Position numbers and translations under genes: made by a program. Shown in pieces: positions 2,372 to 55,319 of a DNA stretch of 64,000 nt. The stretch is from Botryllus schlosseri (lineage: Eukaryota), in assembly GCA_051294905.1 (NCBI GenBank), contig CM119384.1:8680001-8744000 (forward strand). Reading direction: 5' to 3'. The notes under the pieces were generated by a model. The model saw nothing but the letters and a program-made list of their open reading frames with translations. It was not told the DNA's origin and did no database searches. Each line of letters starts with the position of its first letter. The first letter of the stretch is position 1.

Positions 2372-5300
2372 ATGAAATCAATATACCTAGTTCTGTTAGC
2401 CTTTGCATCAACTGCATCAGCATTTCTGTATCCAACGGATAGCGGTACGCAAGATACTGGCAGTTGGTCGGATTGGGGTCCTTGGTCTCCGTGTTCATCG
2501 TCATGCATGATCAGTCGCGTTAGGAAATGCAACGCCAAGACATCAGGGTCCGTATTGCGTTTGGGTTTGCACTCTTCCTTTGATTAATATTGGTATCACT
2601 TCAGATCATCTATTGACCTGACCACATTGATGCTTCTTGAGAGTATGGGAAGCTCCGGATCGTCATCTAGCATCTCATCTCTTCTTCCACTTATTGCTAG
2701 TGGCGGGTAAGTTGTGTTAGCTACCGGAACTAATTTTTCATTACGATACTGCTTCTCAAAGTTCGATCTCCACGCTTTAATTTCGAAAATGTTCTGTTAA
2801 ATTCAAAAGTTAACGACCATAAAGCAGGCTAGCTTTGGATTGAAATTAAGGTAAGGTTCCAATATCACTCTAATAGAGACGATTCCGCTTCCGTTGACAA
2901 AGCGAATGCGATTGCTGCAAAATCCCACTCGTTTCCACGGAATCAGGATTATTCATGATTGCATTTAGATTGGCTCTGTATCTACACATGTTCAAAGACT
3001 AAATAGCGATTGAGGTATTATTTGAGTTACTATAAAACAAAGTATACAATGTGTGTTGTATATATATTTCCTTGGTTACGTCACAAATTATCAATGACGT
3101 CACTTTTCGCTGACGGTTCTTTCTTCCATTTTCCAGCCTCGCCCATATTGACCAGATGTGTTTGGGCGTATAAAAACAATAGATTGCAACTGTGAATGAA
3201 GAACAACGAATTATATAAATTTGTCATTCTATTATATTTGATAATTCCAACAAAATGGCGTAAAACGAGAGCGAGGTTCTGTCATAACAATCACCCCATC
3301 ACGTAAATACGGTTTATAGCGTATTACTTAGGGTTACCATACGTCCTCTTTGAAGAGGATTCGTCCTCTTTTTTGACTTTTTGGAAATTGTCCTCGGAGG
3401 ACGCCCTTTTGTCCTCTTTTTTGCGATTTTGTCCTCTTTTTTGTGAATTTTGGACATATTTATAGCAAAATTCGACTTAGACGCGGTGAATTAGCACCGA
3501 AGTGACGCTCCGGCGCATATTTCGGGAGCAGAGTGGTAAGTTGACCTTTTTGAACCACCCGATAACGTGAAGGAAAAAACCGTATTATGGGCACCGTGCG
3601 AGAAAGTTGACCTTTTTCTTTTTTTAGTCAACCGACCACAAAGTGGGAAAAATTTACTATTTTTTGAGAATTCTACTTCGGGTTTGCAAGTCTGAAAATT
3701 CTGAAAAAGTGTCCTCTTTTTAGATTTCCAAAATATGGTAACCTTAGTATTACTACAATGTCAGCGATATCATGATATCTCTGGTCCATTATGGACGAGG
3801 ATGAATCCCGGCTCCAATGCGAATAATTACTTTACTATGTATGAAATATGCCGAAATAAATGTGCAGTAAGACGATTACATTGAAACCACTGAGTTTGCA
3901 TACATGGTTTGATACTTGAATATTCAATATTCATGCTACATACGAACATCCAACTCGTTAATTAGACTAGTTATGCGACATTAATCCGTCTGAATGCTCC
4001 CCCGCATGTTTGCCTCGTGGTGATCACACCGTAGACTGATCGACTCGGCTAATCGCGAGAGTATCGACATTAATGAATCATGAAAACGTTTTAATCTAAG
4101 TAGGCCACCTTTGCCTTCCGCATTTGTTCGAGGCTAGAAATGCAACGGTATCATGTCATGTTCATGGCGGGATGATATTGCAATTACGCTATCAGCACGG
4201 ACGTTTCAACACAGCTATCGCATCTGTATCACCAGGGGCGCAGTTGGTAGTTCGAAGGTGGGTTCGCCCGCCTAAAACAAAATTCGACTGGACATCGTAA
4301 CTTTATCAGCATCCACTCGGTCACAGTAGATCCGTGACGTCACGCTATTGTTAGATATTGCTATCGCAAAAAGTTTTCACATGGCCTTAATTTTCATCCT
4401 GGTTACACCTATGCCTGTTACTTGTCTCTTTAGTTGTCATAGGGTAGAGGCTTTATATTTTCATTTTGATCAAAGATAATTGCGTGATCGCTATTTTACG
4501 ATGTACTGGATTGTGCAAAATAACCGATTACAATCATTATTACTTGAAAGTCTTTGAATGGCCGGGATTGATTTAGATTACAGATGGCGATGCCCTATGT
4601 CCGGATTACATTATACTCAATTTTAATGTGAAAAGAGTGTTTTAACCCAATTTAGTTACGCCTGTGTTCGTGCTGTGCTGGAAAATTTGCGCTGGGTGAT
4701 TTAGTGCTAGATCATTGTCAAACGTATTAAATTAGTCATACATGACAAGAAATGTAGATATTTTTAGATCTTTAGATGTGTCATCTCTCATGCTGATGAA
4801 TGCGCTAGGATCTTCCTCATCAAGTAACAGCTTTCTTCCGCTAATCATGTCGGGCGCTCTTGGAGGTGGTTCAACTGGTATGGGTGATACCGATTCGTTG
4901 ACAACACTACTCTTGCTCACGTCAATGACCGACAACTCAACGTCTTCTTCTTCCAATGACTTGCTGATGTTGATGTTAGTTGGAGGGGGCGGTCTGGGTG
5001 GATCCAGCGGAAACGGCGGAGGGTTGTGAGTGGGCCTGGCCGTAATCAGTGAACGAGAAATATATTACTAAGGGTGTCTTCATACAGATCCTCGCAGGAT
5101 CCTCTGATCACCATGCTTCTCCTCAACTCTATGAGCAGCAACAATTCGTCTGGAATGTCCGATATATTGCCTCTCATCAATTTACTGTCCAATTCTGGGA
5201 CAGACCAGTCTTCGGACATGTCACTCATGCTAATGCTCATGAATATGGGCAATAACAACTCGTCTAGCATAGACCCTCTTTTACTACTTCAACTCTTAGG

Positions 5301-6672
5301 TCAAGGGTCGTCATCCGGGTCGTCATCCGCGACCCAATGCACAGGCTTGAGCATAGAAAGAACGGTAAAGTATAATCCGATTGTGTGATATATTCCAGCT
5401 GTATTACATGGAAGTGACATTTTCTCAGAAATGCGGCGATCAGAAATGTGGCCTCGGCACGTGCCTCACCAACTGGGGTCCGTTTGGGGACTGTTCTGTT
5501 ACTTGTGGCGGAGGATCTAGGAGGAGAATTCGCTCGTGTACGTGCACGAGCCCTATGACGGGAATGCCTCAATGTACTCAACCTTTGGAAGAGAAGAGCC
5601 CATGCGGCCATAATCCATGTGGTGAGAATAGGCCTACTTTTATTCTCGTAGATCAGTGGTTCTCAAACTGGGGGCGCGCAAGCTTCTGAAAGGTGTGCGA
5701 AGCCGCAGTCAACTGAATAAATTTTCGCGCCATGCGCGCTTTACCTCCAGCTCGGTATTTACTATGTCTGCAGTCCGAATTTCATATTCGAGAATTCTGT
5801 CTAAAAAAGTTTGAGAACCACAGTTGTAGATTATGCCTATTCATAGTTGTTAAGAAACGCCTCACGCCACGACAGGATCACCGGACGCTCAATGGTTAGA
5901 ATGGGGTCCGTACAGTTCTTGTCAGCCATACGGAATGAAATGTTACAAGACCAAAAGGAGAAGCTGCTCCATAGACATCGGATGCGTCGGCGCTTTCGAG
6001 CAAGCAGTGGAATGTACCTGCGATAGTGCGCCTGAAATTCAACCGGAAGGTCCGTGCGCAGTGTCCTGGTCGAATCGAGTAGACTGTGGAGTTCCTGGAA
6101 TCACGCGGAGTATGTGTGAGCAGTCCGGATGCTGCTTTGACTCCTCATCGCTCAACAGCTTTTGGTGCTATCGTAAGTTATTGAATGTTCTCGCAGTGTA
6201 CCAATGAATCCAAATATATCGAAATGGAAGTCGTTCAAGTTATATAACATTAGGGCTGAGATTTACTGTTGTGAAAGTATGGGTATCACAANNNNNNNNN
6301 NNNNNNNNNNNNNNNNNNNNNNNNNNNNNNNNNNNNNNNNNNNNNNNNNNNNNNNNNNNNNNNNNNNNNNNNNNNNNNNNNNNNNNNNNNNNNNNNNNNN
6401 NNNNNNNNNNNNNNNNNNNNNNNNNNNNNACTTTAGCGTAATTATACATCTGCCGCAATTACAGGCTTCTTTGTATACTAGCCTCTGAGCACTTCTCCGC
6501 CATCGACTGTAGAATAACTAATGCAAATTAATGATACAATACATGTTTAAATATGCATGCATGCTGCATTGCTTTTATTTATGAAACGACGGACTTATTG
6601 ACAAAACACAATTCGCGTGCCAATTTCATACGCAACAAATGATTATTTTCTACAGATCCTAACAGCGGTTGA
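2372..6672 (+). CDS. Gene 1: secreted protein (~439 aa), signal peptide + 3 TSRs (first split by a long Ser/Leu/Met/Gly insert) + trefoil domain
   Basis: Exons 2372-2547, 2605-2706, 4768-5025, 5088-5364, 5429-5621, 5876-6172, 6656-6672, all GT-AG and frame-consistent (1320 nt). Signal MKSIYLVLLAFASTASA. TSR motifs WSDWGPWSPCSSSC, WGPFGDCSVTCGGGSRRRIRSC, WLEWGPYSSC. Trefoil CAVSWSNRVDCGVPGITRSMCEQSGCCFDSSSLNSFWCY. The last exon is less certain because of the N gap. Confidence 0.8.
3329..3746. mobile_element. hAT-type MITE family F4 (418 bp) in gene 1 intron 2
   Basis: TIRs TAGGGTTACCATA / TATGGTAACCTTA. Perfect 8-bp TSD GTATTACT (3321-3328, 3747-3754). GTCCTCTTT subrepeats. Confidence 0.9.
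5654..5823. mobile_element. Charlie-like hAT MITE (170 bp) filling most of gene 1 intron 5
   Basis: TIRs CAGTGGTTCTCAAAC / GTTTGAGAACCACAG. TSD TCGTAGAT / TTGTAGAT (7/8). Confidence 0.85.
6292..6429. other. Assembly gap (138 N) inside the last intron of gene 1
   Basis: Run of N. Confidence 1.
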
Positions 6673-9505
6673 AGAAGGACAGTTCCTGCAATTTCTAAGG
6701 AAGTGCGGATATAGAGTTTTTTATTCTGTTTAATAGTTACATTTCATGTTTTCTCTTTGCCATGTTGCTTAAAGTAAAATCACGGAGCCGAATAAACCGA
6801 ATTGCAGTCTTGAAATCATCTGATAAGATTTTTAAGAAAGTTGAGATACGAACTGAACCGAATTGCCAAAGCAGTAAAGTCCGGAGAATCTCCAATGTCG
6901 ATTGACTTCGTTTCGTTGTGCAGTTGTAGATCTCTGACTCGATCCTGAAGCGCGCTATATGGTATACTTACTTCACGACATTAAATATATTCTTCAAACA
7001 AGTAAATTAACCTGAATAGAAGCATAATATACAAGCAGAAACCGTGGACCGAGAACAGATTTGAGACTGTAGCAGGCAGGACATATTCGCTGTAGTATAT
7101 TGAAGGTGACGCCTATATATAGTCCGAAGCAAACCTTTGAATAAGCTCGATAAATATCTACTATATATAGTACGTCATTTATATAAAGTTCCGATAAACG
7201 TATACCATACACGACTTACACGTGCATCTGTAATTAAAATCTTAAATAACTTTAATCACCTAAACGATATTATATATATTCGATTTTATTCTAAATCGAA
7301 CGCTAAAAATGTTATCTCAAATTTCCGGTTGTTCCGAGATTGAAGCCATTACGTCGAAAATTACAGAAATTCGAGCCACCTATGAAATATTCTCCTTCCA
7401 TACGCGTATGAGTAATATCGTAGAGCTAGAAATAAGACACGGATTCTAAATTGAAGTAGTCACGTATAGTCGACGTTGAATGCACCTGCGGCTTCTACAA
7501 GAAAACTATATTTCTTCCAAAGTAATCTCTCAATATCGCATCAAATAAGCCTACTCCTATTAGCAGATGCTGATAAAGTTGTATTTTTTCAGTATATTCA
7601 GAATTCGATCATTATCAATTTTCCCCAGTATTAAATGACGCGCAACTGGCGTCCCTCGTGTACCAGACACACAATTGTCGAATTTAGTCGGTCCGCACTG
7701 GTTCTATAAAATGGCCTCTCGAAATTTTTGAAACTAGGGAACCGGTTAGCATTACAGGCAATGACTGGACTGACTGAAAAATGTGACATTTGTGATAGAA
7801 CCGGATGACAAAAAATTCCAGTCCGACCACAGCCTCTATTTATCACTGGCCCACATTAACTCGAATAATCCCACATTTTTCGGTTCAACTTGACTCTCCA
7901 GCATTCTTGCTGATAGGAAACCAATGAGCCTAGCCGATAACAATTATTGCGATTGAAATATGCCTATTGCTGTTTTAATGTTCAAGTATTTTCATCCATC
8001 GGCAGATAATTATCAGATAAAATGTATGCATAAAATATTATTATCATCATAGCTGCACGCACAGTGTATGAAATCCATAACATACTCTATAATATATTAG
8101 CAAGAACGTTGACTTTTTGAAACTATTTTTGACTGAAAGTTCACATACGGTATTGCAAAAAATCCTCCGAACATACGAGCCTGTAATAACGTGATAACAT
8201 GCAAATAACTAGTTTTATGTATAAAACAAGGTAAGCCATTCTTCTCGATCACTTAGTAGACAGATATGGTATCCTTTCACGCCACTTAATTGAGCCAACA
8301 GCGATAACGAGAGATTTCATGTGGTTTCAAACCAAGATCGCTTGGATTTTGAAGAGGGTCAAAACAAGGAATGAGCGTGTTAGAAATAACTTCACAATGT
8401 CAAATTGCACTAGAATTGAAAATAATATTGAAAATATTTATTAACCCTCTACTACAACTCATATTAGAACACAACCCTATGAATGTCACAGCTATATACG
8501 AATAACCCCCGCGGCGAGAAACCTACTATTTCGTCGGGATGGCGCACAATTCTGGAGCTATAGTCTGTCGTCGTCGCGTTCTACACGACAAACGTCACGA
8601 TCTAATTTCGGTCATCATGTGATAAGGGCCGGCATGTGGTTACTTTTATGATACCGAATTGATTTACTTGCAGTCTAATAAGAAACAACAGTGTGAAGAT
8701 GTTGAGGTGAAAACCAATGATTCCACAATTCTGAAAGCAATACGTTAAGGATATTTTACGACATACGACCGAGATTTTATGACATTAATGGTGAACGACG
8801 CGGTAACTTGAAATATGTACAGGATTTGCTAATTCAAATTATCAAATTATTGGTTAGGAGAAGTTCAAATTTTTAGCTGGATGTGGCAATCAACGCTATA
8901 ACTAGTTAATCAAAAACTATTTTAGGCAATTGCATAGATCCGCATAGACGTTGAAGTGATTTAACCGGAAGCTCATATAGGTATAAATGTAGGTCCATGC
9001 CGTCAACCTCGTATTTTCTCAAGGTTCCATCTCCATACGATCTCAATTAAAAAATAGATACCCACAAGCTAAGATAACTGGCAATACGCTTACACAAAAG
9101 CTAAGTGTTGTAATAAAATGATATTCGGGATGTATTCGTTTCTCCCGGAGCAGCGGCTATACGTTCAAATCATCCAACGTTTTGTGATTCAAACTAACCA
9201 AAATTTAGCTCGGTGTAGCGCCCGGGGGGCAGAGTACCAGCTGAAGATGTCGTGGGGTAGCAGTGCTGGTTGGAGGAAGGCTGATCAGATAAGGTTTCTT
9301 TTTTAGAGACAGGAGTATTTTGGCAATATAGGAGGACGATTATGAATTTTCAGCCCATTCAGCGTAGTCTCAGATGTCAATCGCAGCTCTACTAGCGAGA
9401 CTGTAGTTCAGATTTTTAAGCGTGACTGGTAATCCGTCAATAGCGCCTGACCATATTTGACGAGCTATTTTCTTCCACGCAGGCTTAGTATCTCCAACAA
9501 TTATA

Positions 9506-12500
9506 ATGGAGAGCCTATTTCATTTGCTACTGCTGACCTTTTTGGTTGGGGCAATTCATGCCCAAATACCTGGCATCGGCAGCCAAGAACCAGTTGTTGC
9601 GGTGACTGGTTTGAGCCTTGGTAACGTTAGAAACACTGGTAATAGCATAACGAAATGTTCCCGCCCTACGTATTTTTACGGAAATACTTTACAGGAAGCG
9701 AATTCAGTCTCGAGGTTTGGCAAGGAAATCCAGTTTCATGGAGAGAGTGGACAAATTGGAGTGGGTGTACTGGATCCTGTGGAGTTGGTACGCAAGAACG
9801 GCGCAGAGAATGCTGGTTCAGGAGAGAAATAGTCGACATCGGGTAATACCTTGAAATAATTTCGAAAAACAACCCACTCTCATTGAGATTTCGTACAGAC
9901 GCGTTCCGGATATAGCGGCTGCGTCATCTGGTTCTAGCGATCAGTCACCAAATACGCGACAGGGGAGGTTCTCTGATATTGTTACAGGAGAAGGATGCTA
10001 CGGATACGCGAGTCAAGCCCGGGTAAACCTCATTCGCGCTTGCGATTTATACCACATATGTCTGACGCATTGATGCAGCAGTCTGCAAATCGCATTCATA
10101 GAAACCCATAGAATGATTATACCCTATGTAATTTTTAAGAATCCGAATCTGCTGCGAAAGCAATTATTGTCGAGTTTCTGAATCCGAATTCGATTTCCAG
10201 AATTTTTTAATCCAAATCCGAACTATCCTAAACGAAGTTATGGGTTAAAATATGAAACAGAATCCTAAAATATCCAAAGTTGGACTACGCACAATCGGTA
10301 TCCCATCTTAACTTTTGAAGACTGGGCAATATACCTATCCACTTCGCACCATAATTATACTCATTATGACTGCCGCAGTGCTGTTGCTTATCTACAAAAG
10401 TTGGGAATCTATACAGTACCTGATTACTGTCCTATCTATCACCGAGCTGTTCGATAATCTGATGAACAATGAACATCATGAATGACTTCCCAACGGCTCT
10501 ATGTAATCCACCTTTAGGCAGGAGTGGTTAGTAACCATGCTGGTTCGTTAGTTCCATTTTTCGGTTTTGACGTGTAGTCGCTACCTGTTTCCACTGCTTA
10601 CCCCAGTGCACACGTGGTCAAATAAACCATTGGGTATACGTAGTAGTACGAGAAGTATTGCTGTCAATTTCGGTACTCTTCGATACACGCACTAATATCG
10701 AGAACTACTGTTACTATTCGGAAAATAGAAGTACATTTTTAGGCGTAGGCAGCAGGGTGCTTCGTAATTTCGAACAGTCCCTTTCTAGGATCAAGTAGCC
10801 AACCCCTTCCTTTAGAATCCCAAATCGAACTTTTCTCAGCATAATCGCTCATTCGTAATTAGATGCACGCTTAGCGTTTCCGCCGAACAATGTCACAATG
10901 TGACGATGTCCTTTTCTCCTATTCTTCTCTCGTCTGAGAAAACTAGTTAATTTGAACGCGCTCACCGCTCAGCCAGTAATACAAACAATCACCAACATTG
11001 GAGGCGAGAAAAATTAGATCGGTCGCGGGCGCACGGCTTCCGACGCGCGGCAGCGCTCTAATCAGTGCTGCCGTTGACATGATTTTTGGGACAATGATTA
11101 GACTCAAAAAGAACAGTACAAATAAGATAAGTACCAAAGTCATTGTTTTATTCGTATATTTACGAGCCGTGCCATATAACATTATATACCTTTTGCCAGA
11201 AACAACCTGCTCGAGCAACTCCTAATGTCTTGCAATAAAAATTACGACACACTTCTTGCATTTTTGGGTATCACTGTGATCTGAACTAACGGTCTTTCCT
11301 GTTGCCGACAGGGTACTGTCACCATTGTTGTTGTTGATATTGCAAAGTGCGAAACGCCCGCCCTTCAAGCTTTGTTTGACAACACCAAAATCCTGACGAA
11401 ACTAATAAGTTTTACAGATGTAGACTTTTCAGCAGCAAAAAACTATATGTGTAATGTAATATATTTAGCATTCATTTATAGTTCAGCGGCCTTCCTTTAC
11501 TTTTTGAGCGTATTTATTACACCATCATAACATAAACCGAGTTTGGCCCCCTTGTTATACCAAGAAAATATTGAAGGCCTCACATTCATAAGCATCGGCC
11601 CTGATTCACGAGATTTGCACCAAGTCATATAGAATGTCTTGAGTCATATGACTTGGTCGAGTCATGCGCTATGACTCGAGTATAAGTCAGAGTTGATGCA
11701 CAAAATGACTCCAGTTAATCGAATCATTTTCCATTTTTAAGAAAATAAATTGACTCAAGTCGATTCAACGAAAATGTACGACTCGAGTCATTACAACCCT
11801 GTAACAACTAGTTGAAGTATTCGTGATCAACTTTCAATGAACCGCCGACATTTAGAAAACCGTCCAGCATCTTTGCTTGTTACTTTCAGGGCTGTGCTCT
11901 AACACCTTGTATTGGTACTCTGGGACCATGGACTACATGGTCCGCATGCAGTGCACCATGTGGAGAAGGCTCACAATTCAGGACTCGAGTATGCCAAGGA
12001 CCTGGAGAATGCATTGAAGAGACGTTTGCCACAAGAGCGTGCAATGCTGGTCCATGCTGTAAGATGCATCAGTTTTATGTGAACATGTGTACTCTGCCTG
12101 CAGGGTTGTAAAAAAGTCACATTGGTCCCGATTCACAAGTCAATCTCACTTGCATACCGTAGTTTTGACTCGAGTAAAGTTTAATCCTTTTCAATTCAGC
12201 ACAGAGTGAAGTCGTGGTAATGAGGGTCGAGTCCCGAGTTGAGTAATGTTCACCCCGATTTTTTACAACTCTGCTGCTTGGGTGATCTCGACTGCCTCGC
12301 ATTCATAGTATGCTGGTTTTCATGATTCTGAACAATTTCTGGTGCTAATTTTGATGTACGAGTACTGATATACGATATGCCAATAATGTGGAACTTTTCT
12401 TTGTGTAACCACTATTCTTTGAAGTTACAATTTAGTGCCTGTCTCATCCATCCGATTCCAGAGTGATACGCAATGACTCGAGTACCTACAAGTGGAGTCA

Positions 12501-24500: not shown

Positions 24501-27500
24501 GCGTAGCCCTGCGACATCTTCAAGTTCACATCAATTGATTTTATAGGTACTAATTATGTAGCATGTTCATCGGCGTACCATCTACGTATTCATCAGTGTC
24601 AATTTGAAATTGTCGATATCTGCTTACGCTGCTTTGATATTGTCTGTGGTCCGGCAGAAATTTCTGATACGACGGCTTGTTTTCTTCCGAGTTTGACTGC
24701 GAAAGATGCCAGTCACGAAAGGCGTCTTTGGAATCAATTTAAAACATTTATGCGTTGTACAAAACCGTTTCTTGTTCGCTATCATAATCTGCACAAGCAG
24801 AATATTGAAACCCCAGATTGACACCGCTGTTTTGAATTACCACAACAAATAGATTCGTGGACACAATGGACCTCATATTCCGTTTGCTCTGCACCGTGCG
24901 GGGCTGGTCAATCCTTCCGATCTAGACGGTGTGCTGCAAGTGACGGCACGTCCGCACCCTCTTTGTCCGCTTGCCCCGATCCACAAAACCTCGGCTCTTT
25001 CCAGAGCCAGGCCTGCAACCTGGGACCTTGCTGTGAGCATGAATCCTTCCGAGATTCGTCGAGAATTCTCCGAATCCTTTTTTGTTTCGATGTGGTTTCG
25101 ACTTTGACCGATTGAACGACTGTCGACAGATGGCTGGACGGTCTGGACCGAATACAGCGTGTGTTCTGCCACCTGCGGAGATGGACAAATCAGCAGGTCC
25201 AGGAGATGCGTGGATCTCGCTACAAACATCGATTCGCCTTCCCTCAGCAACTGTGATGATCCACAAAATTTGGGAGCGTTCCAATCTCAGCCGTGCAACT
25301 TGGGACCATGCTGTGAGTAGACACAATTATGCGTGCTTGGCACAACATTTAAGATGTTGCGGTAGAATTTAGAGCCACGAACAAGGCTGCCAATAAGATT
25401 TCTTATAAGATTAGTCCTTATTTTTAACTTGTGTCCTTGGTTTGCCGTTATTTTCAATGCTCACCATGGGTAACAATGTATTCACGAACAATATTCATGT
25501 GGGTTTACAAGTAAACCCAATGACGACAATGCCATGATTAAGACTAGCTGAAAGTCCTGATGTTTTTTAGTCAGCAGTTTATCTGTTTTTATCTGTCCTT
25601 ACTTTTTGATCCATCTCATTGACATCCCTGATTACCACTTTTTGTAACTTCTGATCACTTTGTCGGGATTGTTACTATGACAGAATCGCATACAGGATAG
25701 TGGCTGTGACACGGCCGATGTTGTCAATCAAATCAGTGTTACGTCCAATTTCGTACCGCATGTAATCTAAGCTACATTAGGCAATGTATATGCCTCAAAA
25801 CATCAAGGACAAAAATAAAAGTGTTCTATTCCTATTTCCAACTCAGAAAATGAGAAATACCTTGGAGTTTTACTAGACTCGAACATGTCCTGGAAGAGTC
25901 ACATTCAGTCACAAGAAAAAAATGATCACAGAACTGTGGTTTGTTCTACAGCCTTAGACTACATACCAGTCTGGGTCCTTCTGATACTCTTTAAATCATT
26001 TTTCCAATCATAGGTTTCAATTGGCATCATCTGTTGGGCGGCGGCCTGTGTTAGCGCACTGAAGCCACTGCAAAAACTACGACATCAGGTCCTCTGTATC
26101 ATAGCCAGGGCCCCAAAGGGACAAGGATGTGTGTCCAACAAATCACTGCTCAATTGCTTATATCATAAACATAAAAGATATGCGGAAACTAGAAATTGAC
26201 AAGTTTATGTACGAGTTCCTCTGCACCGAAAACTTCAACAACTTCTTTACCTCGGTATTAAAAGTCCATAAGTACGACATTCATGCGACTAGGTCATCCA
26301 ACTACCGTATGGTAGACAAAAAAGATCATCACTCTATCAAATATCCAGGACTTGATTTGTGGAACAGTATCTCGCCGGCTATCCGACAGTCATCGAGCAT
26401 GTCCACATTCAAGTCGAAATACAAACAATTTACACTGAATCATTACTGGTTACTAGTTAGCCCTATAGTTTACCGGACCACGACCTGACATAACGATATC
26501 GCCTTCCGTCACGTGACACCTTTTTTGTCGCCTGTCCTTTTATATTGTCTTCTTTTACTTTTCATTCATTGTGCATGCCTCCTTTTTTATATCGCCTAGG
26601 CCAGGTGGGGGTGTCTGATTTCGAAGACTACTCCAAGTCTTTTCGACACCTTAGTATCTTTCATTGTATCGCAGTTTCGTGGTGTATCGAAATGATAAAA
26701 TTTTCAGCAAAGAATTAAATTGAACCAAGTATCGAGTGTTGACTTGGGAATTGTTGCACGCAGATTCCTGGACTCAATGGACCAGTTATTCGGAATGTTC
26801 CGCCTCATGCGGCAACGGCCAGTCCTTCAGAAGCAGGCGATGTGCCGCCAGCGATGGCTCAAATGCTCCGTCCCTGTCTGAATGTCCGGATCCGACCAAC
26901 GCTGGTGCATTCCAGTCGCAAGCATGTAACCTTGGACCGTGCTGTAAGTAGTATGACACACCTATCGTGGTAATATCTTGACTGGATCCCATTTTTCATA
27001 TCCATTCTAATCATAAACTGGTGGTGTATTTTGAAACTGTCACATAATGTCTAATTTGCCTTGGGTGGATATCTAGGTTCATTGTTCACGTCAATATTTC
27101 TGTGATAACGATTTTTGGGTTAACACATCGAAATATACTTTAACCATTTCTTCGTGGATACAGGATATCGATCAGTGTAGCCATGCTTCAAGAATGATAT
27201 AATTTTTTCAATAAACGTTTTAAAAATATCCCAAAATATGTAGTGAGAGCAAACTTTGTACAAATCAAGCGTCAGTAGATAATGCACATGTAACGGCCTT
27301 CCAGGACTTGATTTGATGTGTGAATAGAGAGTGGAATTATTACCAGCAACTTGGCAATTATGATTACTGAGTTAAAATAGGCGCCTACCGCCTTTTATCG
27401 AGGATTATTTCGCATACCAATTGCAATAACAGTATTCTTGGCATATCCAACGGCAGTTCAGAATTAGGAGTTCTTGCTAACAATGTCCGTTTTCCGTCAA

Positions 27501-30500
27501 TATAAACGCGCAATTTCAGACGAGTGGACCCTGTGGACCGACTGGAGTCAGTGCTCTCGGTCGTGCGACGCCGGTCAGATCAGCCGGAGCAGAAGATGCG
27601 TGGACATCGCCACAAACACCGACGCGCCGTCCCTGTCGAGTTGCTCGGACCCGTTGAACTTGGGTGCCTTCCAGTCGCAGGCTTGCAATCTAGGACCCTG
27701 CTGTAAGTGACACGTTATTTACAGCGACCCAGAGACTGTACAATCATTGTACAAAGCCTGAAAGCTGTATCTTCGGTAAAGAATTTTACTAACCCAGAGA
27801 TGAGCACATTGAATGTTTTCAAATCCAAACCCTGTATTGAATTTTAGATTCAAGCCAAATTGCATGTTTAATTTGGTATCGTTATCAACACCAAGTTCAA
27901 ATCCAGTAAAGGATGAAATTTGTTGAAATTGAAAGTGATGAGAAATTTCATGTCCAAGTCTGAATCCAAATTTGGTTTCGAAATAATAATAATTTATATC
28001 GGTGGTTCCCAAACTTTTATGACTCGTCCTCCCTATATCAATATCAACATATCTAGGTCATCAGTGACCTCATCATTCCACTTTTCCGTATTATTCAAGT
28101 AGGTAGTATCCACTTACTCAAGCAGTTTTGCATGTATACTACATCAAGTTCAACCTTTTCTTTCTTCACAATGTCACAAAATCGCCCACTTTGAGATCCA
28201 CTAAAATCAATAAATCCATCTCTAACTAATCCCTGCCAAACATAGCGAATACAGTCCACTTTTGTCGAGGCTAGTCCGAGACCAACCTATCCGTTCTTTG
28301 GATAGTTTTTTCCATTGCTGCCCTCATTCAGATTCATGGACCCAATGGACTTCGTACTCGGAATGTTCCCAGACTTGTGGCGACGGACAGTCGTTCAGGA
28401 CCAGGCGATGTGCGGCGTCCGACGGGTCCAACTCGCCGAACCTTGCCGAGTGCCCCGATCCCACCAACGCTGGCGCGTTCCAGTCACAGAATTGTAACTT
28501 GGGACCTTGCTGTGAGTAATTCTCTATCAGTATATCTGACGGAAGTGTTTAGAGCAGTCGCTGATCGTAGCTGTTTCAAGTAAAAGAAGTAATGATGAAT
28601 TTGGGAAGGGGGGTATGTCACACATCGTTTCGGAAGGTCAAACGGTCATTGAATCCCACCTGGACAAACAAGTCGAGCACCTCGAGTCAAATGTTTTCAT
28701 ATGCCGAAATAATATCCCTCTCGCAACTAAGACAACTATGAGTTATTCTATTCTCATTCTATATTATTACTATCCTGTTATGCCGAAGGTAGCCTCGAAA
28801 ACTGCTGCATCGTTTTCAATCAAAACCTGTGCAGCCTATACCGATTGAAACCACATCGTTGTAGACTAGTGATCGTGTAGTACAACTGGAATTACGGAAC
28901 TGCGGGTAAGGAATGGTCAGGGGTTCTTAACATGGATCATTGATAGCAAAAGGATTAAGAAGCCCTGGTGTAGATTATAAGAATTTTAGATTTTTTGCGA
29001 TGCAAGAGCATCACCTGACGTCGGTGATGTCAAATTCGATCTAAAGCTAGAGCCTCGATCAACAAGATTTAATCGATAGAATGCAAGTAGCTTACTTTGA
29101 AAGTGGCTTAGTTGCCCGACTTCATTGTTTGAACATCGGCACAGTTTCTGAGTGTGTCGGCATGCAATTGTAGACGGATGGGCGTCCTGGTCCAGTCAGT
29201 CAGACTGCTCCGTCACATGCGGAGTCGGAGAAGCCTCCAGAAGACGACGCTGCCAGACCGACAAAGGGGAATTTGCCAACGACGAGAACTGTGCCATCCC
29301 AGGACAGCCTGGCGCGATACTGACAGAGACGTGCCGGGGGCCGAGATGCTGTATGTTGTACAAAATTTGATAGCGCTTTCTGCGTCGAAGCGTTTGATGA
29401 TCTCTATGCGATTTCTCGTTAGACTCGTATACGCAGTGGACCGCATATTCTGAATGCAGCCAGTCCTGTGGAGCGGGCCAGATATTCCGAAGCAGGCAGT
29501 GTGTCGCCGAGGACAACGGCGAAGTGGTATCAGCAACGAATTGCATCGACGTTTTGAACCTGGGCACTTTCCAATCGCAAACCTGCAACCTTGGACCCTG
29601 CTGTGAGTTGATGGGGATAGTTTCCGACAGGCTTGTTAGAGTATGTGTGACTAATAAGGTGACGGTGTCCGGACCTGATTTGCATTAACATGGTTGTTTG
29701 CTAGGCAGAGGTGCTGCGTCAGGTGCTAGAATATTTTAGGGCCCGAATTTTTAATTCAGACAGATGTAACTCAAACTGTATGGACTATATAACGTAATGT
29801 GTCGCTATAATTACAGCGTAGATAAGTTGACAGCGCAGTTGTCAGAGCTTAGTTGCACTTCAGTTACGGTAGCTTAACATCATTGTGCTTTCATCTGGCT
29901 AATTGTGATTGTTGTACAATAATATTCACCAGCTCGCGTTTACAATCAATATTTAATGCTTGACATGTGAAGCACATCACATACGAAGAATTAACCTGAA
30001 ACAAAGCTACAGTCATAGGGAGTTTTGTTTTGAGAGGTAAATGAATATCGCTCATCGACAGATTGGTAGCTAGTAAATTTTTTTGTTTTCTTAGATCTGA
30101 AGCGTAATTGGTGAGCGTCATTCATGATTAGAATTGAGAGCAAGGACTGTGGTACTCGTGATTTGCAGGCAGGGACTATTTTAGTAATTCAAATCAGATT
30201 ACTTTGAATACTGATACTCCGAGGGTATGTAGTCATAGAAGTAATGATCTCAGTATATGAATGTCGTAATGGTGTGTTACATCTCAGAGGTGTATAACAC
30301 AAAATGCTTTTACCATTGTATTCTGCATGTCTCTGGATTATTAACAAACCAATAACGGAAATCTGACAAGTGTGAAACCAACTAACACTACGACGATGAT
30401 GTGATGTCAAGTTGCATTTCATTAACATTTGCTTCAACGATGCACGTATTTCTCTTGGATAAAATGGAGAAGATGGTGACATGCGATATGTGGATTAACA

Positions 30501-33500
30501 AGCCGGGTGGATTAGCAAGTTGAAATACTATCGAGCAACAACTTTATCGAATGTTGACAGTAGTGAAAGAGGCCAAGAACAGAACAGCGTGGAATTGACG
30601 TACCACAAAGCTTTGGGTTGAATGGTGGAATAATGAATGAACTCGACTGAAAGATTCAATTTTCGCCATTGGCCGTTATAGCGTGTGTACAGCCGTCTCA
30701 TATATAGTTGATGTCTTGAATACAACGATGTGCTCCTAAGCCAAAAAGGCTCCGCAAAGACATTATAAAGTTGTAACCTTCGCGTATGGCCAAGTTTATA
30801 GAGCAATAGCCCCCTCTCTCATGCCAAAGGCGTTGGTTTTCTTCCCATTGAGTAGTAAAACCTAGAAAGCATCACAATGGCCGATCGACTTTGATAAGTG
30901 TACACCGTGCACTTGTACAGTACAATTGTATCCATGTAGAAAATAGAAACATCACTTCTTGGTGAAGTATACTTCGGTACTTTTAGTCAAATTATAGTGA
31001 TAGCAGATAAATGTGATGATTTTGAATTTGCTCAGAACCATATTGTTCAAGTTGAATTGTAACTTACCTATGAAATATGCATCATTTCAGACCGCTTCGC
31101 ACAGTGGGGCTCATGGAGCAAATGCGATTCCCGATGCGGACAAGGAAACATGCAGAGAACCCGTACTTGCGTGACGACAGATGGCCAACCGGGACCCAAC
31201 ACCGGCTGTAGCAACGATCCAAACGACTTCATCATCAGAGCGACTTGCATGAAACGTGCTTGCCGTAAGTATTTGACTATGACAAATATCATTTGTTGTG
31301 TCGGAAAAGTATTACATTCAAATGGTGTGTTGTGTGTACAATATAACGTTGACTCGAATATGAAATCATCACAATCAGGAAGTAGTTCTGAAACATCCAA
31401 ATGCTTGAGTATTGAAGAGTATTCAAAGTAATATTTTGATGGGAGTCAAAATATTGCAATAACAATATTCAGGTTGAGCTGTCGATGACAAGGGAATTTC
31501 AGCGCAAAATACCTCGTAGACACTTTATTTGAAACTCGACTTGCTTCGCAGCTGGAGTATTCCGCCAATGGGCGCAATGGGGAGAGTGCAGCTTGACTTG
31601 TCACGGCGGTGTCCGTATCAGAACAAGACAGTGCACCACCGAGAGGTGCATCGGAAGAAGTCGCGAAGCTCAGATTTGCAACGATTTTGCTTGCGAAGGT
31701 TGGTGGATATTGGTGTACTTGTATACCCGTTATGACTCTTTCTTAAATACACCGCAAGCCAATATTCGAATGACTCACGTCATTACCACAAAATGACTTG
31801 GTCTTGACATTTATGAGAAATGTGGAATCACCTGTAGACTCGCAGACAAATTGTCAAGTCATCATCGACTGGTATTGTATTATCATTACAGCCAGCACGC
31901 ATGATCCTGTTCAGCGCGTGGCATTCATCGCTCATATAACCTCGAGCTGAATTGATAACGTGTGATACTGTTGCCAGGCACTGTGTCAGAGATGGTCAAA
32001 GTAGTCATCACCGGTACTCAAGTAGAAGTAATATTGTAGATCTGTACTCGAGTAATTTCCAAGTAACTAAAATAGTATGTATTCTGGTCCTGGTTTCGCC
32101 TAAAAAACTGAAAACTTGAGTAGAAGTACTTTGTTACTGACCACCTGTTCTCACGTCGTAAACTCTTGTTCAGTTCGTCCCCAAGGAACATGGACAGCTT
32201 GGTCCAACTGGACCCCTTGCACCCAACCTTGCGGCGGCACATCGACGCAAACGAGAGTGTGCGTGGGCGGCAGGACTGCGACCGACTGCGGCCGAGATTG
32301 CGAAGGTAGGGAACTGTGTTCTGTGGCCATACTGGCATGTTTTCAACGCGCCTGCACATCTACCAGAATACAGACGAACAAGGACTTGCACCGATTGCCC
32401 GAGAGGCGGTTCGTTCAGCATCGGGTCCTGCCAAGTCGTCGGAATTCTGAAGCAAGATTGCGGTTTCGGTGGAATATCTGCTGAGGTGGGTTGACATGTG
32501 ATATTGGAATGGGGAGACGCGTTTTGATAGCTTGAAATGGCCGTCTTCTACAAAGAAAAGTCATTGTAGCAATACCATTTAACTCAAAGACTTTTCGTGT
32601 GCTCCTTATTGGAAGTTAATGGCACAATATCCAGCACATAAATGGATCTTTGAATGAAAATCGATTTGGCGAAATTATGAGCAATGTAATCTTGAAAAGA
32701 ACCTCAAACAAAGTATGACACTGTAAATACCGATATATTCTTGGGACACGTTGAGACCCGGGTAACTTTGGAACCCAAACCCATTTCGACGGTGCAACGA
32801 ATGACCGATATCAAACATACCGCTGTCCAGACTGATATCGGCACTCTAATATAAACACAGCCATGGTAGGGTAGTAGAGAGATGTGATTCGGTCTACAAG
32901 ACCTATCGAAAAACTAGCTGGACGGTCAAATTTAAGGATCACCAGCTCGGTGTTCCAGAATCAGCGAGTCTTGCACTGTTATTGGATTAGCAAATACTGA
33001 GCACTTCGGTTTACAATCACACAAACCATTGGCTCCCAGCCTTTTTAAGGCCACGGCCCAATTTCCAATTTAAACTCCACGATTACACGGCCGAGCTCTA
33101 AATTTGGTTAGCTCGTTGCTAAAAAATTGAAAAGGACCTGATTGCTAACTGATTACTAAATGAAATTGAATTACTAATGAAATTATATGAAAACACCGGT
33201 CAACACATTATTGACTACCCAAAAAAAGCAAGCGACTTCAGATTGTAAACCACTCGCGTAAACAATCCGGCTGTCGTTCGATTAGTTTGAGATACGCTAA
33301 ACAGCCATCTTTGTTTTGTTCGTAGGAGTGCACCAACGTCCGCAACTGCTGCTACGATGATACTGTGCCGGCCGGTGAACCCTGGTGTTACCGTCAAAGT
33401 AAGATCCTTGCCCTTTAACCCGTTGTCCTTCATCACATTGGAGACGTTTTTCCAGGCGGCACGTATTCGTTAAATGCACTCGGGAGAAGTCTAGGAGGTG

Positions 33501-33634
33501 CCTCCGGAGGTCTTGGCGGTCCTCCTCCAACAGTGCCTGATGAGACAGACGAACCTACACCACCCCCACCACCCGCACCAACCGACATGCAAGAGCCATC
33601 TGGGATGGATCATATGGATGGTATTTTAGATTAG
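9506..33634 (+). CDS. Gene 2: giant secreted protein (~1726 aa), signal peptide + ~26 TSRs + trefoil domain + acidic Pro-rich tail
   Basis: Exons 9506-9620, 9695-9842, 9899-10022, 11890-12058. Then 19 array exons: 13392-13571, 14011-14190, 14822-15004, 16113-16292, 16982-17161, 17258-17440, 17911-18090, 18951-19133, 19418-19597, 20365-20547, 20849-21028, 21404-21586, 22058-22237, 23844-24026, 24853-25032, 25130-25312, 26764-26943, 27520-27702, 28332-28511. Then 29174-29350, 29423-29602, 31091-31264, 31552-31698, 32174-32305, 32367-32485, 33326-33398, 33456-33634. All GT-AG, open frame of 5181 nt. Signal MESLFHLLLLTFLVGAIHA. Trefoil CQVVGILKQDCGFGGISAEECTNVRNCCYDDTVPAGEPWCY. Possible alternative last exon 34146-34150. 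Confidence 0.85.
10540..11225 (+). pseudogene. Possible heavily degraded rhodopsin-like GPCR remnant nested in gene 2 intron 3
   Basis: Broken frames give CWFVSSIFRF*RVVATCFHCLPQCT (TM3/ICL2-like) and KISTKVIVLFVYLRAVPYNIIYLL (TM6-like) in the right order. Many stops and frameshifts. Motif resemblance only. Confidence 0.25.
11625..11801. mobile_element. Right-end remnant of hAT-type family F3 (TIR CAGGGTTGTAA)
   Basis: Ends GACTCGAGTCATTACAACCCTG, with GACTCGAGTC subrepeats like those at 36726-36851. Confidence 0.7.
12101..12560. mobile_element. Family F3 element just downstream of gene 2 exon 4
   Basis: Starts CAGGGTTGTAAAAAAGTCAC, ends GTCATGACCACCCTG. Interior (CACAAGTCAATCTCACTT...) matches 36099-36150. 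Confidence 0.75.
15470..15830. mobile_element. Degenerate copy of hAT-type family F2 (TIR CAGAGGTGGTCA, GTAGAAGTAG subrepeats)
   Basis: GAAGTAGAAGTAG motifs and terminal ACTGACCACCTC. Left boundary uncertain. Confidence 0.55.
22309..23215 (+). mobile_element. Internally deleted hAT transposon (907 bp) with CGGBP-like zinc-finger remnant, in an array intron
   Basis: TIRs TAGGGCCATTT / AAATGACCCTA. Perfect TSD CCAATGAT (22301-22308, 23216-23223). AAAGTCATAT subterminal repeats at both ends. ORF 22838-23104 MPKV...SCQICSCIVKHEKRFFAEQHLATLMH resembles the N-terminal C2H2 finger of CGGBP1-related hAT transposases. Confidence 0.85.
25810..26720 (+). mobile_element. 5'-truncated L2/CR1-type LINE fragment (RT C-terminus + 3' UTR)
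   Basis: Encodes KYLGVLLDSNMSWKSHI (YLG motif at the end of the RT domain) and the degraded ORF 26129-26488. The 3' UTR GGACCACGACC...GTGGGTGTCTGAT...CATTGTATCGCAG recurs elsewhere in the window. Confidence 0.85.
31987..32147. mobile_element. Short F2 copy ending ~25 nt before the acceptor of exon 32174
   Basis: CAGAGATGGTCAAAGTAG...TTACTGACCACCTG. Confidence 0.75.
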
Positions 33635-37883: not shown

Positions 37884-46020
<8,137 letters not shown>

Positions 46021-46211
46021 CTTGCTACGTAAATTCAGAAATCTCAACTCAATACGCCAACGCCGCCGACAAATCTGAACACATTTTACATCCGCCAAAA
46101 ATTGCTTCTTCAAACAGCGACAGCGTGTGTTGAGATATGTCGCGATCATCTCTATGTTGATATAGCTACGTTATAAATTGCTATATATATTCCCTAAAAC
46201 AATGATTTATA

Positions 46212-46460
46212 CAGAGATGGTCAGTAACGAAGTACTTCAACTTTTTGAGGTATTTGAAGCAGATTTTGCCTACTCACACTACCTTTGAAGTAGTGATGAT
46301 TTTAGACTACTTCTACTTCTACTCGACAGTTTTCAGTTTTGTAGTCAAAAATAAGCGTAGAATGCCTACTTACTTACTTACTTGTGAACCACCACTCCTA
46401 ATTCTACTTGAGTAGAAATTACGGCGTTACTTCTACTTCTACTTGAGTAGCGACGGTGAC
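46212..46460. mobile_element. F2 copy (reverse orientation) upstream of U2AF2, truncated by a LINE tail
   Basis: CAGAGATGGTCAGTAACGAAGTAC... closely matches the reverse complement of 38539-38797. Confidence 0.85.
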
Positions 46461-46462
46461 TA

Positions 46463-46880
46463 CATCATCATCATTGGTTTATTAGCAATTTGATCAGTTC
46501 AATACACCACAAAAATATGCGATACAATGAAAAGACAGATATCGAAGCGACTTGGAGTAGTCTATATAATCAGACCCCCACCTTGACCTGGGCGATGTAA
46601 AGAGGAGGCATGCACACTGAATGAAAGTAAAGAAGATAGTATAGAAAAACGACAAGAAATCGGGCGGCATGTCATGGGAAGCGAGATCGATAAGTCAGTC
46701 GTGGTCCGGTAATCTTGAGGATGGACTGTATTTATTTAGTAGTAATTGCTTGTATTTCGACTTGAATGTGGACATGCTCGTCGACTGTCGGATGGCCGGC
46801 GGGATACTGTTCCACACATCAGGTAGAGCGATGATCTTTTCGGTCGATCATATGATATTTGGACGACTACTTTGAACACC
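46463..46880 (-). mobile_element. LINE 3' fragment with (TGA)n tail
   Basis: Reverse complement matches 26290-26700. Ends AATAAACCAATGATGATGATG. Confidence 0.8.
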
Positions 46881-46910
46881 TCTGGATTTATTTATATCAT
46901 TGTCAAAAAC

Positions 46911-47010
46911 CAGGGTCACCATTTACGTCCTAGGAAGATTTGTCCACCTTTTTCAAGAAATCGAAAATGTCTTCCGAGAACACCAAAATGTCCTCCTTTT
47001 GGTAATATAT
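46911..47010. mobile_element. F4-related fragment
   Basis: CAGGGTCACCAT...CGTCC...GATTTGTCC motifs resembling 3329 and 61904. Confidence 0.45.
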
Positions 47011-47024
47011 GGTCCTTCGTATCA

Positions 47025-47540
47025 TTGCCAGGCCCAGGGAGCCAGGCTGCGCGTCCAACAAATCACTGCTCAAAAATTGCGGTCTCCTAAACACAAAATA
47101 TATGCGTAAACTAGAAATTGCCAAGTTTGTGTATCAGTTCTATCCAGAGGTGGTCAGTAACGAAGTACTTGAAGTAGATTTTTTCTTCCCACACTAATTT
47201 TTAAGTAGTTATGATTTTAGACTACTTCTACTTCTACTTGACAGTTTTCAGTTTTGTAGGCACAAATAAGCGTAAAATACCTACTTACTTACTTACTTGT
47301 GAACCACTACTTCTACTTCTACTTGAGTAGAAATTCCGGCGTTACTTCTACTTCTACTTGAGTAGCGACGGTGACTACTTTGACCACCTTTGGTTCTATC
47401 GCGGTCACTTCCCAAAAAATTTTAATGACTTTTAATAACCTCGAAATCAAAAGCGCATAAGTGCAACACCCCTTCCTATATTTCATTGTATCGCAGAACC
47501 GGTGTAGTGAAATGATGAAATTGTTGAGAATAAATTAAAT
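47025..47540 (+). mobile_element. LINE fragment interrupted by an F2 MITE
   Basis: GTCCAACAAATCACTGCTC...AAACTAGAAATTG matches 26110-26220. Tail-like CATTGTATCGCAG...AATAAATT at the right end. Confidence 0.7.
47145..47392. mobile_element. F2 MITE (248 bp)
   Basis: CAGAGGTGGTCA...TGACCACCTTTG. Perfect TSD GTTCTATC. Confidence 0.9.
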
Positions 47541-49442: not shown

Positions 49443-52458
<3,016 letters not shown>

Positions 52459-53218: not shown

Positions 53219-53262
53219 TATAGATTACTAACCTGCGCCCTGCGGTAGGTTAGTAATCTATA
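53219..53262. repeat. 44-bp hairpin with perfect 16-bp arms in the NDUFS8/SGF29 divergent intergenic region
   Basis: TATAGATTACTAACCT-12 nt-AGGTTAGTAATCTATA, flanked by GTTATAT direct repeats. Confidence 0.8.
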
Positions 53263-55315: not shown

Positions 55316-55319
55316 GTCC

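Follow-up and report, generated by a model that had tools for sequence, protein, structure and literature searches.

The window analysed here is a stretch of 64,000 nucleotides from Botryllus schlosseri (GCA_051294905.1, contig CM119384.1, positions 8,680,001 to 8,744,000, forward strand), and positions below are counted from its first letter. Two neighboring genes lie on its + strand, gene 1 at 2372-6672 and gene 2 at 9506-33634, and both encode mosaic proteins with TSRs and a trefoil domain. As the preliminary description had held, they are two separate genes, and according to RNA contigs and uninterrupted translations both are intact and transcribed.

Gene models and transcripts

Gene 1 has seven exons for a protein of 439 amino acids (45 kDa, 26 Cys). 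Its spliced translation contains no internal stop, and every splice joint was seen in RNA contigs of runs X11 and X15. Exon 1 (2372-2547) carries the start codon, the signal peptide and the N-terminal half of TSR1 with WxxWxxW and Cys1-3, as read from the sequence, the spliced translation and a weak TSP_1/TSP1_CFP_C match, and ends at phase 2 in a Gly codon. Exons 2 (2605-2706) and 3 (4768-5025), both running from phase 2 to phase 2, encode the first Leu/Met and Ser/Gly/Asn unit of an insert in TSR1 and further insert units, respectively. The RNA contigs have a loose end in front of 4767 that equals the end of exon 2, so that 2706 joins 4768 directly, and the X11 and X15 contigs cover exon 3 with a joint from 5025 to 5088 (GT..AG).

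Exon 4 (5088-5364) contains the end of the insert and Cys4 with eight more residues, as supported by translation and the RNA joint from 5364 to 5429, and ends at phase 0. Exon 5 (5429-5621) provides Cys5 and Cys6 of TSR1 and then TSR2, matched by Pfam TSP_1, and its phase-1 end is joined to 5876 in RNA. Exon 6 (5876-6172) holds an atypical TSR3 and a P-type trefoil together and ends at phase 1, as supported by Pfam, similarity to HrEpiC of Halocynthia roretzi and a structure model. A synonymous A>G change at 5877 is shown by the transcripts. The last exon (6656-6791) consists of five codons (HPNSG), a stop at 6670-6672 and a 3′ UTR reaching at least 6791, as seen in translation and in the X11 and X15 contigs.

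An assembly gap of 138 N at 6292-6429 lies within the last intron of gene 1 (6173-6655) and breaks no frame. The frame here depends on the splice rather than on the gap, because RNA contigs of X11 and X15 bridge the gap by joining 6172 straight to 6656 with GT..AG ends. The length of this intron in the assembly counts the 138 N.

Gene 2 has 31 exons with all GT-AG introns, and its spliced translation of 1732 codons has one stop, which is terminal (184 kDa, 163 Cys). RNA covers its first three splices. Exon 1 (9483-9638) follows a trans-splice acceptor AG at 9481-9482 and contains the 5′ UTR, the ATG at 9506 and the signal peptide, ending at phase 1. Exon 2 (9695-9842) encodes the N-terminal half of TSR1 (TSP_1, 22.8 bits) and ends at phase 2 in a Gly codon, with RNA joints from 9638 to 9695 and from 9842 to 9899 in three runs. 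Exon 3 (9899-10022), covered by RNA contigs whose loose end after 10023 is the start of exon 4, encodes the remainder of a 42-residue loop between Cys3 and Cys4, then Cys4 and eight residues, and ends at phase 0. Exon 4 (11890-12058) provides Cys5 and Cys6 of TSR1 and then TSR2, as read from the sequence and a Pfam TSP_1 match, and ends at phase 1.

Exons 5-25 (13392-29602) are 21 single-TSR exons, phase 1 to phase 1 throughout so that skipping any of them would preserve the frame, assigned by sequence and Pfam TSP_1 (13392-13571, 14011-14190, 14822-15004, 16113-16292, 16982-17161, 17258-17440, 17911-18090, 18951-19133, 19418-19597, 20365-20547, 20849-21028, 21404-21586, 22058-22237, 23844-24026, 24853-25032, 25130-25312, 26764-26943, 27520-27702, 28332-28511, 29174-29350 and 29423-29602). 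Exons 26-28 (31091-31264, 31552-31698 and 32174-32305) encode three divergent TSRs, the first two with TSP_1 matches of 26.9 and 36.1 bits and the last atypical with 16.5 bits, under the cut-off. Exon 29 (32367-32485), which uses the sole in-frame acceptor, encodes a Cys-containing linker and the first trefoil half and ends at phase 0. The second trefoil half (..CCYD..WCYRQ) is in exon 30 (33326-33398), which was assigned by sequence, translation and Pfam and ends at phase 1. Exon 31 (33456-33634) is translated into a Gly/Pro/acidic tail of 59 residues that matches no Pfam family, with the stop at 33632-33634.

The 5′ leader of gene-2 mRNA is non-genomic in both RNA contigs and raw reads and equals the published consensus of the tunicate spliced leader (SL); the gene-2 mRNA is SL trans-spliced. 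Downstream genes of tunicate operons are SL trans-spliced, and gene 2 lies downstream of gene 1 on a common strand, as would be the case if the locus were an operon transcribed as one unit, or a single gene. On the other hand, gene 1 ends with a stop of its own, the contig of its 3′ UTR reaches only to 6791, about 2.7 kb separates 6791 from the acceptor at 9482, and the only contig within 6792-9480 is an unrelated one that covers 38 bases at 7776-7813. In run X25, gene 2 was found without a gene-1 contig. Tunicate operons combine SL with a very short spacer, and an operon is most improbable here because of the long spacer and the appearance of gene 2 alone in X25, even though SL is present. 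The single-gene reading was rejected on the basis of the RNA contigs.

Domains, TSR array and loop

Pfam matched TSP_1 and Trefoil in both genes and, together with the gene models, confirmed the architecture that had been proposed for both, namely signal peptide, split TSR1, more TSRs, atypical last TSR, trefoil and tail. The proposed enlargement of a loop in gene 1 and of a repeat array in gene 2 was borne out as well. Cys3 is paired with Cys4 in canonical TSRs, and in TSR1 of the two genes a loop between these cysteines, of 209 residues in gene 1 versus 42 in gene 2, interrupts the domain. The TSRs total 3 versus 26. Introns were searched for additional concealed TSR exons, and none was found.

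The array exons of gene 2 are of two types, A of 180 nt and B of 183 nt, that mostly alternate, without exception in exons 10-23. Exons of the same type are up to 94% identical, and introns are included in the block duplications. Growth of the array via unequal crossing-over of A/B exon pairs is the best explanation. The TSRs are nearly linker-less and lead to the trefoil and then to the acidic Pro-rich tail. SCO-spondin and hemicentin resemble gene 2 in being secreted and in having one TSR per phase-1 exon in an exon-duplicated tandem array, whereas gene 2 is set apart from them by its strict A/B alternation, by TSRs with hardly any linkers, by the split in its first TSR and by the trefoil at its C-terminus.

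Against TSP_1 (PF00090), TSR2 scored 37 bits in gene 1 and 46 bits in gene 2, and the A and B exons scored 36 and 33 bits, all of them above the curated cut-off and with the W-x2-W and six-Cys pattern. The final TSR of either gene and the halves of the split TSR1 scored under or close to the curated cut-off of this family. The trefoils scored 48 bits in gene 1 and 43 bits in gene 2, where the two halves were joined, with a curated cut-off of 21 bits (PF00088), and both show the six-Cys pattern CX9-10CGX..CX..CC[FY]..WC[FY]. Both split TSR1 halves also matched weakly, in every case under the cut-off, the insertion-tolerant C-terminal TSR of properdin (PF22195, TSP1_CFP_C). The insertion in the properdin TSR has about 25 residues and is structured, unlike the 209-residue low-complexity loop of gene 1, which has about ten hydrophobic Leu/Met patches with Ser/Gly/Asn spacers between them.

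When the TSR3-trefoil exon of gene 1 was modeled, it matched the structure of BAI1 TSR3 with a TM score by target of 0.68, and its trefoil matched the crystal structures of TFF3 and TFF1 with 44-49% identity in the modeled alignment. Both genes have the trefoil fold and the six-Cys pattern in common with vertebrate TFF1-3 and frog integumentary mucins, which are secreted modules associated with glycans and mucins. TFFs differ from the proteins of this locus in being small peptides or parts of mucins.

Relation between the two genes

Four intron sites had been proposed as common to the two genes. A phase-2 intron in a Gly codon at the TSR1 insert is indeed found past Cys3 in both, although its distance from Cys3 differs, being 5 residues in gene 1 and 9 in gene 2. 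Two other sites agree fully, as a phase-0 intron is located exactly 8 residues after Cys4 and one before Cys5, and a phase-1 intron directly past TSR2, one base beyond its last Cys. The fourth, a phase-1 intron just past the trefoil WCY, proved not to be common, as it follows WCY + 1 nt in gene 1 versus WCYRQ + 1 nt in gene 2, in different codons. Furthermore, the trefoil is cut by a phase-0 intron (32486-33325) in gene 2 but uncut in gene 1, a 61-nt intron separates the last TSR from the trefoil in gene 2 while TSR3 and the trefoil form a single exon in gene 1, and an additional phase-1 intron separates the signal peptide from TSR1 in gene 2 only.

The paralogy claimed in the preliminary description is thereby supported in one respect and not in another. 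Common ancestry of the two genes rests on adjacency, domain order and the three matching N-terminal intron sites, but the domain sequences give no specific support to it. The two proteins are only 26-30% identical, via generic Cys/Trp positions. None of the gene-1 TSRs has its positional counterpart in gene 2 as the best match, and the trefoil of one gene ranks that of the other 387/399 and 362/398 reciprocally.

These ranks and the TSRs without positional match, along with the different C-terminal exon structures and the trefoil that is intron-split only in gene 2, could mean that the two genes are not mutual duplicates. Each would then have been assembled independently by shuffling phase-1 TSR/trefoil exons, and their adjacency and similar domain order would reflect coincidence or merely a partial 5′ duplication. 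We regard such independent assembly as a serious but rather unlikely alternative, against which several features stand. Within and behind TSR1, three successive intron sites and their phases match, while none of the remaining 24 TSR exons of gene 2 contains an internal intron. The first TSR has an oversized Cys3-Cys4 loop in both genes, and the two genes have strand and neighborhood in common. A single trefoil clade for both genes was neither rejected nor favored by the AU test (p-AU of 0.68), as the tree of 39 columns was too short to decide. We prefer the view that the N-terminal module of both genes, comprising split TSR1 and TSR2, goes back to a common ancestor that was duplicated locally long ago.

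HrEpiC family and a candidate role in the tunic

Sequence similarity makes gene 1 the orthologue of H. roretzi HrEpiC, and therefore it is not new, as the family was deposited in 1999 (BAA82359.1 / Q9Y1V4). We take the name to mean an epidermis-specific gene of Halocynthia embryos. HrEpiC (P0066) matches residues 4-98 of the gene-1 exon 6 query with a phmmer E of 5.6e-12, colinear over the TSR and the trefoil, and the identity over this exon is 41-42%. Like gene 1, HrEpiC has a signal peptide, a TSR1 interrupted past Cys3 by Leu-rich and Ser/Gly/Asn-rich repeats, an atypical TSR (C-x6-KC-xKTxxRxC), a trefoil directly behind it and a short tail. Unlike gene 1, it has a Pro-rich linker in place of TSR2, and its Lys/Glu-rich tail is longer. 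P0152 is a close orthologue of gene 1 with the same layout, and insert motifs of the SLLPLLLSGG type are conserved in both HrEpiC and P0152. The full-length AlphaFold model of P0152 has a low mean pLDDT of 36.

Gene 2 has only the general layout in common with HrEpiC. Colinear similarity to the family over the atypical TSR and the trefoil is found in gene 1 but not in gene 2, whose trefoil is distant. Gene 2 also lacks the HrEpiC-type loop that gene 1 has, because its 42-residue loop at the same place is without Leu/Met motifs.

Among 1.84 billion representatives, only HrEpiC and a near-identical ORF fragment, P0001, aligned with the TSR part as well as the trefoil part of the gene-1 exon query. 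The latter is a read-through ORF from another copy. In a regex scan of the fetched proteins, a TSR-like domain and a trefoil occurred in one protein only in HrEpiC (two variants) and P0152. No TSR was found among the best 150 trefoil matches outside the HrEpiC family, and no convincing TSR-plus-trefoil match in AlphaFold DB clusters. A literature search on HrEpiC and ascidian TSR and trefoil proteins returned no relevant paper beyond an SL review and a preprint on Ciona Epi-1.

Ciona Epi-1 (CsEpi-1) is a tunicate-specific, epidermis-expressed protein that combines a signal peptide with a P-type trefoil close to its C-terminus (bioRxiv 10.1101/2024.09.30.615758). It is required for a hydrophilic, GAG-coated and sturdy larval cuticle, as its knockout makes the cuticle sticky, GAG-free and fragile, and despite the signal peptide the protein was found inside epidermal cells and undetected in the tunic or perivitelline space (bioRxiv 10.1101/2024.09.30.615758). 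TSRs are not mentioned in its published description. With 80.8 kDa and the trefoil in exon 12, versus 45 kDa and exon 6 for gene 1 and 184 kDa and exons 29-30 for gene 2, Ciona Epi-1 fits neither gene exactly in size and exon number, though both layouts could yield them. Its antigen peptide was absent from all fetched proteins.

Our best overall explanation, with a probability of roughly 0.6, is that the locus contains adjacent, separately transcribed ascidian genes for secreted mosaic proteins, an HrEpiC orthologue and a 26-TSR protein, whose N-terminal module came from an old local duplication and which act in the epidermal tunic or cuticle. An epidermal tunic or cuticle matrix would be the likeliest place of action if Ciona Epi-1 is taken as the analogy. 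Both proteins would be made and probably secreted by the epidermis to take part in building the tunic/cuticle surface, where their TSRs and trefoil may bind sulfated or other glycans.

It is conceivable, though improbable, that the proteins, at least that of gene 1, act instead inside epidermal cells or the secretory pathway. In line with a proposal made for Ciona Epi-1, they would then condition cellulose synthesis or other cuticle proteins and would not themselves be structural components of the tunic. The failure to detect that protein in the tunic or perivitelline space despite its signal peptide favors an intracellular role. Both proteins of this locus, however, have signal peptides and many disulfide-bonded domains of the extracellular type (26 and 163 Cys), and such domains do not fold in the cytosol.

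A partnership had also been suggested, in which the same cells would secrete a long TSR rod from gene 2 together with a short sticky partner from gene 1, and the two would bind to one another and make up a net, adhesive or cuticle layer. The designs of the two proteins are complementary, and both mRNAs are present in X11 and X15, two small libraries, with similar contig depths (24 and 49 in X11, 10 and 31 in X15), although contig depth is a poor measure of expression. On the other hand, X11 and X15 are the only runs common to the two lists of runs in which gene 1 and gene 2 are best represented, and X25 has gene 2 at a depth of 325 but no gene-1 contig, a missing contig not being proof of absence. 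We consider an obligate two-component material unlikely.

Equally speculative is a broader version, that an HrEpiC-type gene and its giant TSR-trefoil neighbor form a conserved, tunicate-specific two-gene cassette building the outer tunic surface. The gene-1 protein would use its Leu/Met loop to insert into the hydrophobic cuticle or to condense it, and the 26-TSR rod of gene 2 (~120 nm if extended) would point outward and bind sulfated glycans that test cells provide. If true, it would account for the lack of stickiness of a tunic made of cellulose. The tunic is the innovation that defines tunicates, and we know of few protein parts of it beyond cellulose synthase.

Apart from such a cassette, the locus provides a fully resolved, RNA-supported gene model of an HrEpiC orthologue and a previously unnoticed giant TSR-trefoil neighbor whose first TSR is split in the same unusual way. 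Should the Ciona Epi-1 phenotype belong to the HrEpiC family, both genes would be concrete candidates for organising the cuticle and its glycan coat. In the epidermal tunic/cuticle role that we prefer, the hydrophobic loop of gene 1 could drive self-association or anchoring in a hydrophobic cuticle. The loop also offers a natural example of how a disordered "sticker and spacer" segment is inserted into a compact folded domain. The Leu/Met repeats of the insert recur in look-alikes (P0153-P0157 and P0160-P0166), secreted proteins of about 400-670 aa from marine metatranscriptomes and Logan assemblies in which no Pfam family was found.

Structure of genes 1 and 2

Gene 1 lies on the forward strand at 2372-6672. 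Spliced translation of its seven exons (2372-2547, 2605-2706, 4768-5025, 5088-5364, 5429-5621, 5876-6172, and 6656-6672) gives a product of 439 aa without an internal stop. All joints are supported by RNA contigs, in the case of 2706-4768 by a contig whose loose end has the sequence in which exon 2 finishes. The window, which is animal DNA with a GC content of 0.41, has one N run, a 138-N assembly gap at 6292-6429. A GTAAGT donor follows the trefoil exon, whose last base is 6172, and in transcript contigs from the RNA runs X11 and X15 this base is spliced directly to 6656 across an intron with GT..AG termini, so the gap falls inside the last intron (6173-6655). Thus, the frame of gene 1 is independent of the gap, which affects only the length of that intron.

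The gene 1 protein begins with a signal peptide, followed by the N-terminal half of thrombospondin type-1 repeat 1 (TSR1; WSDWGPWSPC...C...C), an insert, and the rest of TSR1 (Cys4-x9-Cys5-x4-Cys6). TSR2 is canonical and scores 37 bits against Pfam TSP_1, TSR3 is atypical, and a P-type trefoil (Pfam, 48 bits) and five last residues complete the protein. The Cys3-Cys4 stretch spans 209 residues, and the insert is made up of Ser (26%), Leu (21%), Gly (14%), and Met (8%), among others, with ten hydrophobic patches of the LMLL or LLPLIA type. It is encoded by three exons with all introns in phase 2, and its growth by exon duplication fits because exons 2 and 3 run from phase 2 to phase 2. The predicted structure of the TSR3-trefoil exon (pLDDT 67) matches the BAI1 TSR3 structure with a TM score by target of 0.68, and TFF3/TFF1 crystal structures at 44-49% identity. 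In AlphaFold DB, a weak, long structural match to this model was H2XLE2 ('Uncharacterized LOC100179307', 482 aa), presumably a Ciona accession, which might be a relative of the gene 1 family.

Gene 2 (9506-33634, forward strand) has 31 GT-AG exons, and its spliced translation yields 1732 aa with one terminal stop. Contigs of three RNA runs bear out joints one to three and read on into exon 4. The order is signal peptide, TSR1 with a Cys3-Cys4 loop of 42 residues, TSR2, 21 single-TSR exons, three divergent TSRs, a Cys-containing linker, a trefoil (Pfam, 43 bits), and a Gly/Pro/acidic tail of 59 residues. The single-TSR exons fall into a 180-nt kind (A) and a 183-nt kind (B); the two mostly alternate, without exception from exon 10 to 23, and identity within a kind is up to 94%.

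Duplicated blocks in this array include introns (17229-18149 versus 21373-22296, 85%; 16930-17447 versus 24800-25319, 88%), and therefore the array grew by unequal crossing-over, which the sequence points to as having been fairly recent. As all array exons are phase 1-1, copy number may differ among individuals. No extra TSR exon or pseudo-exon was found in the long introns of gene 2. The cysteine count of the protein, 163, is odd, and from the start of the last TSR to the trefoil (32174-32485) there are seven versus six in gene 1; a free thiol could permit disulfide-linked multimers.

The 5′ leader of the gene 2 mRNA is absent from the window. Together with the acceptor AG (9481-9482, forward strand), it is identical to the 25-nt spliced leader published for tunicates, GATTGGAGTATTTGGTTGTATTAAG, the 'Chordata 1' consensus (PMC3795323). 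Thus, gene 2 is spliced-leader trans-spliced, with the leader joined at 9482/9483.

Gene family and probable common origin

The gene 1 TSR3-trefoil exon was searched against 1.84 billion representative proteins. Among the 150 matches listed, out of 317, only two span both halves of the query: P0001, a read-through ORF from another copy with 92% identity, and P0066, which is HrEpiC of Halocynthia roretzi (BAA82359.1). A word-index search with HrEpiC as query, rather than the exon search, gave P0152, a transcript-derived close orthologue with the exact gene 1 layout. A regular-expression scan of every fetched protein finds a TSR-like pattern alongside a trefoil pattern in P0066, P0151 (a variant of P0066), and P0152 alone. 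Like gene 1, HrEpiC has its first TSR interrupted by Leu-rich and Ser/Gly/Asn-rich repeats with invariant SLLPLLLSGG-type motifs, but it lacks TSR2. HrEpiC belongs to a set of Halocynthia embryonic genes named as epidermis-specific (Satoh laboratory, 1990s). Gene 1 adds a member to this known, little-studied family, and what is new beyond that is gene 2 and the tandem arrangement.

A further family of proteins from marine metatranscriptomes and Logan assemblies (P0153-P0157 and P0160-P0166; secreted, roughly 400-670 aa) is composed almost entirely of Leu/Met patches like those of the gene 1 insert, spaced by Ser/Gly/Asp (LLPLLLSGG, DLLLIMTLM). No Pfam family matched these proteins, and the patch motif may represent a more widespread module that has yet to be described.

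A preliminary description had proposed the two genes as tandem TSR-trefoil paralogues. Its observations were accurate as to domain orders (translation and Pfam), loop lengths, and TSR counts (3 and 26), and the models now have RNA support. Of the shared introns that it claimed, the three N-terminal sites correspond. The first is in phase 2 in a Gly codon, 5 (gene 1) versus 9 (gene 2) residues past Cys3; the second is in phase 0, exactly eight residues past Cys4 in both; and the third is in phase 1, one base past the final Cys of TSR2 in both. The post-trefoil site, however, agrees only approximately, as the phase 1 intron follows WCY in gene 1 but WCYRQ in gene 2. Moreover, gene 1 has TSR3 and trefoil within a single exon, unlike gene 2, where a 61-nt intron lies between the last TSR and the trefoil and a phase-0 intron splits the trefoil. 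Gene 2 also has an additional intron after the signal peptide.

Common origin is favored by the neighboring position on a shared strand, a rare order of domains, the oversized Cys3-Cys4 loop in both first TSRs, and the three matching intron sites, given that none of the remaining 24 gene 2 TSRs is interrupted by an intron. Other observations speak against it or are neutral. Overall identity is 26-30% via generic positions, and no gene 1 TSR has its positional gene 2 counterpart as first match. The mutual trefoil ranks are 387/399 and 362/398, whereas the gene 1 trefoil is 60% identical to that of HrEpiC. An AU test on 39 trefoil columns, run as the phylogenetic refutation that the preliminary description had proposed, neither rejected nor supported a single clade of both genes (p 0.68). 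The C-terminal likeness could be convergent. We put the probability that at least the N-terminal module has a common origin at roughly 65%.

Expression, likely function, and surroundings

Words from gene 1 occur in several small RNA libraries and those from gene 2 in a partly different set, X11 and X15 being common to both. Both mRNAs were assembled there, at contig depths of 24 and 49 (X11) and 10 and 31 (X15). X25 has a gene 2 contig at depth 325 and no gene 1 contig, where contigs prove presence, never absence; raw reads of X24 include a few for gene 2 and none for gene 1. Co-expression thus occurs, yet is not obligatory. An operon or a single gene, for which the shared strand and the spliced leader of gene 2 might speak, is unlikely because no RNA contig links the two genes and the gene 1 contig ends at 6791, 2.7 kb from the gene 2 acceptor.

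Both proteins have signal peptides and solely extracellular-type, disulfide-rich domains. Sulfated glycans and matrix are established ligands of TSRs, as glycans and mucins are of trefoils. Ciona Epi-1, an epidermal protein specific to tunicates, carries a signal peptide and a trefoil; its knockout leaves the larval cuticle sticky, fragile, and glycosaminoglycan-free with disordered cellulose; oddly, the protein was detected inside cells (bioRxiv 10.1101/2024.09.30.615758). By analogy, we lean towards both gene products being epidermal and acting on the tunic or cuticle surface. Their partnership, raised earlier as a possible two-component extracellular material, is hypothetical.

The window has no further TSR or trefoil gene. 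The downstream neighbors, within 42459-57410, are ordinary genes: RRM (U2AF-like), NDUFS8-like Fe-S subunit (4Fe-4S), and BCS1 on the reverse strand, and SGF29 on the forward strand. Short bits of unrelated, well-expressed X25/X24 contigs at 5654-5821 (gene 1 intron 5) and 7776-7813 (intergenic) are probably repeat copies or small exons that belong to a different transcript.

Polymorphism in the species is high. Among DNA runs from other samples, the share of the words present is only 0.43-0.63. Transcripts differ from the assembly at many exon positions in 4888-5952 and 9515-9735, one of them being a synonymous A>G at 5877.
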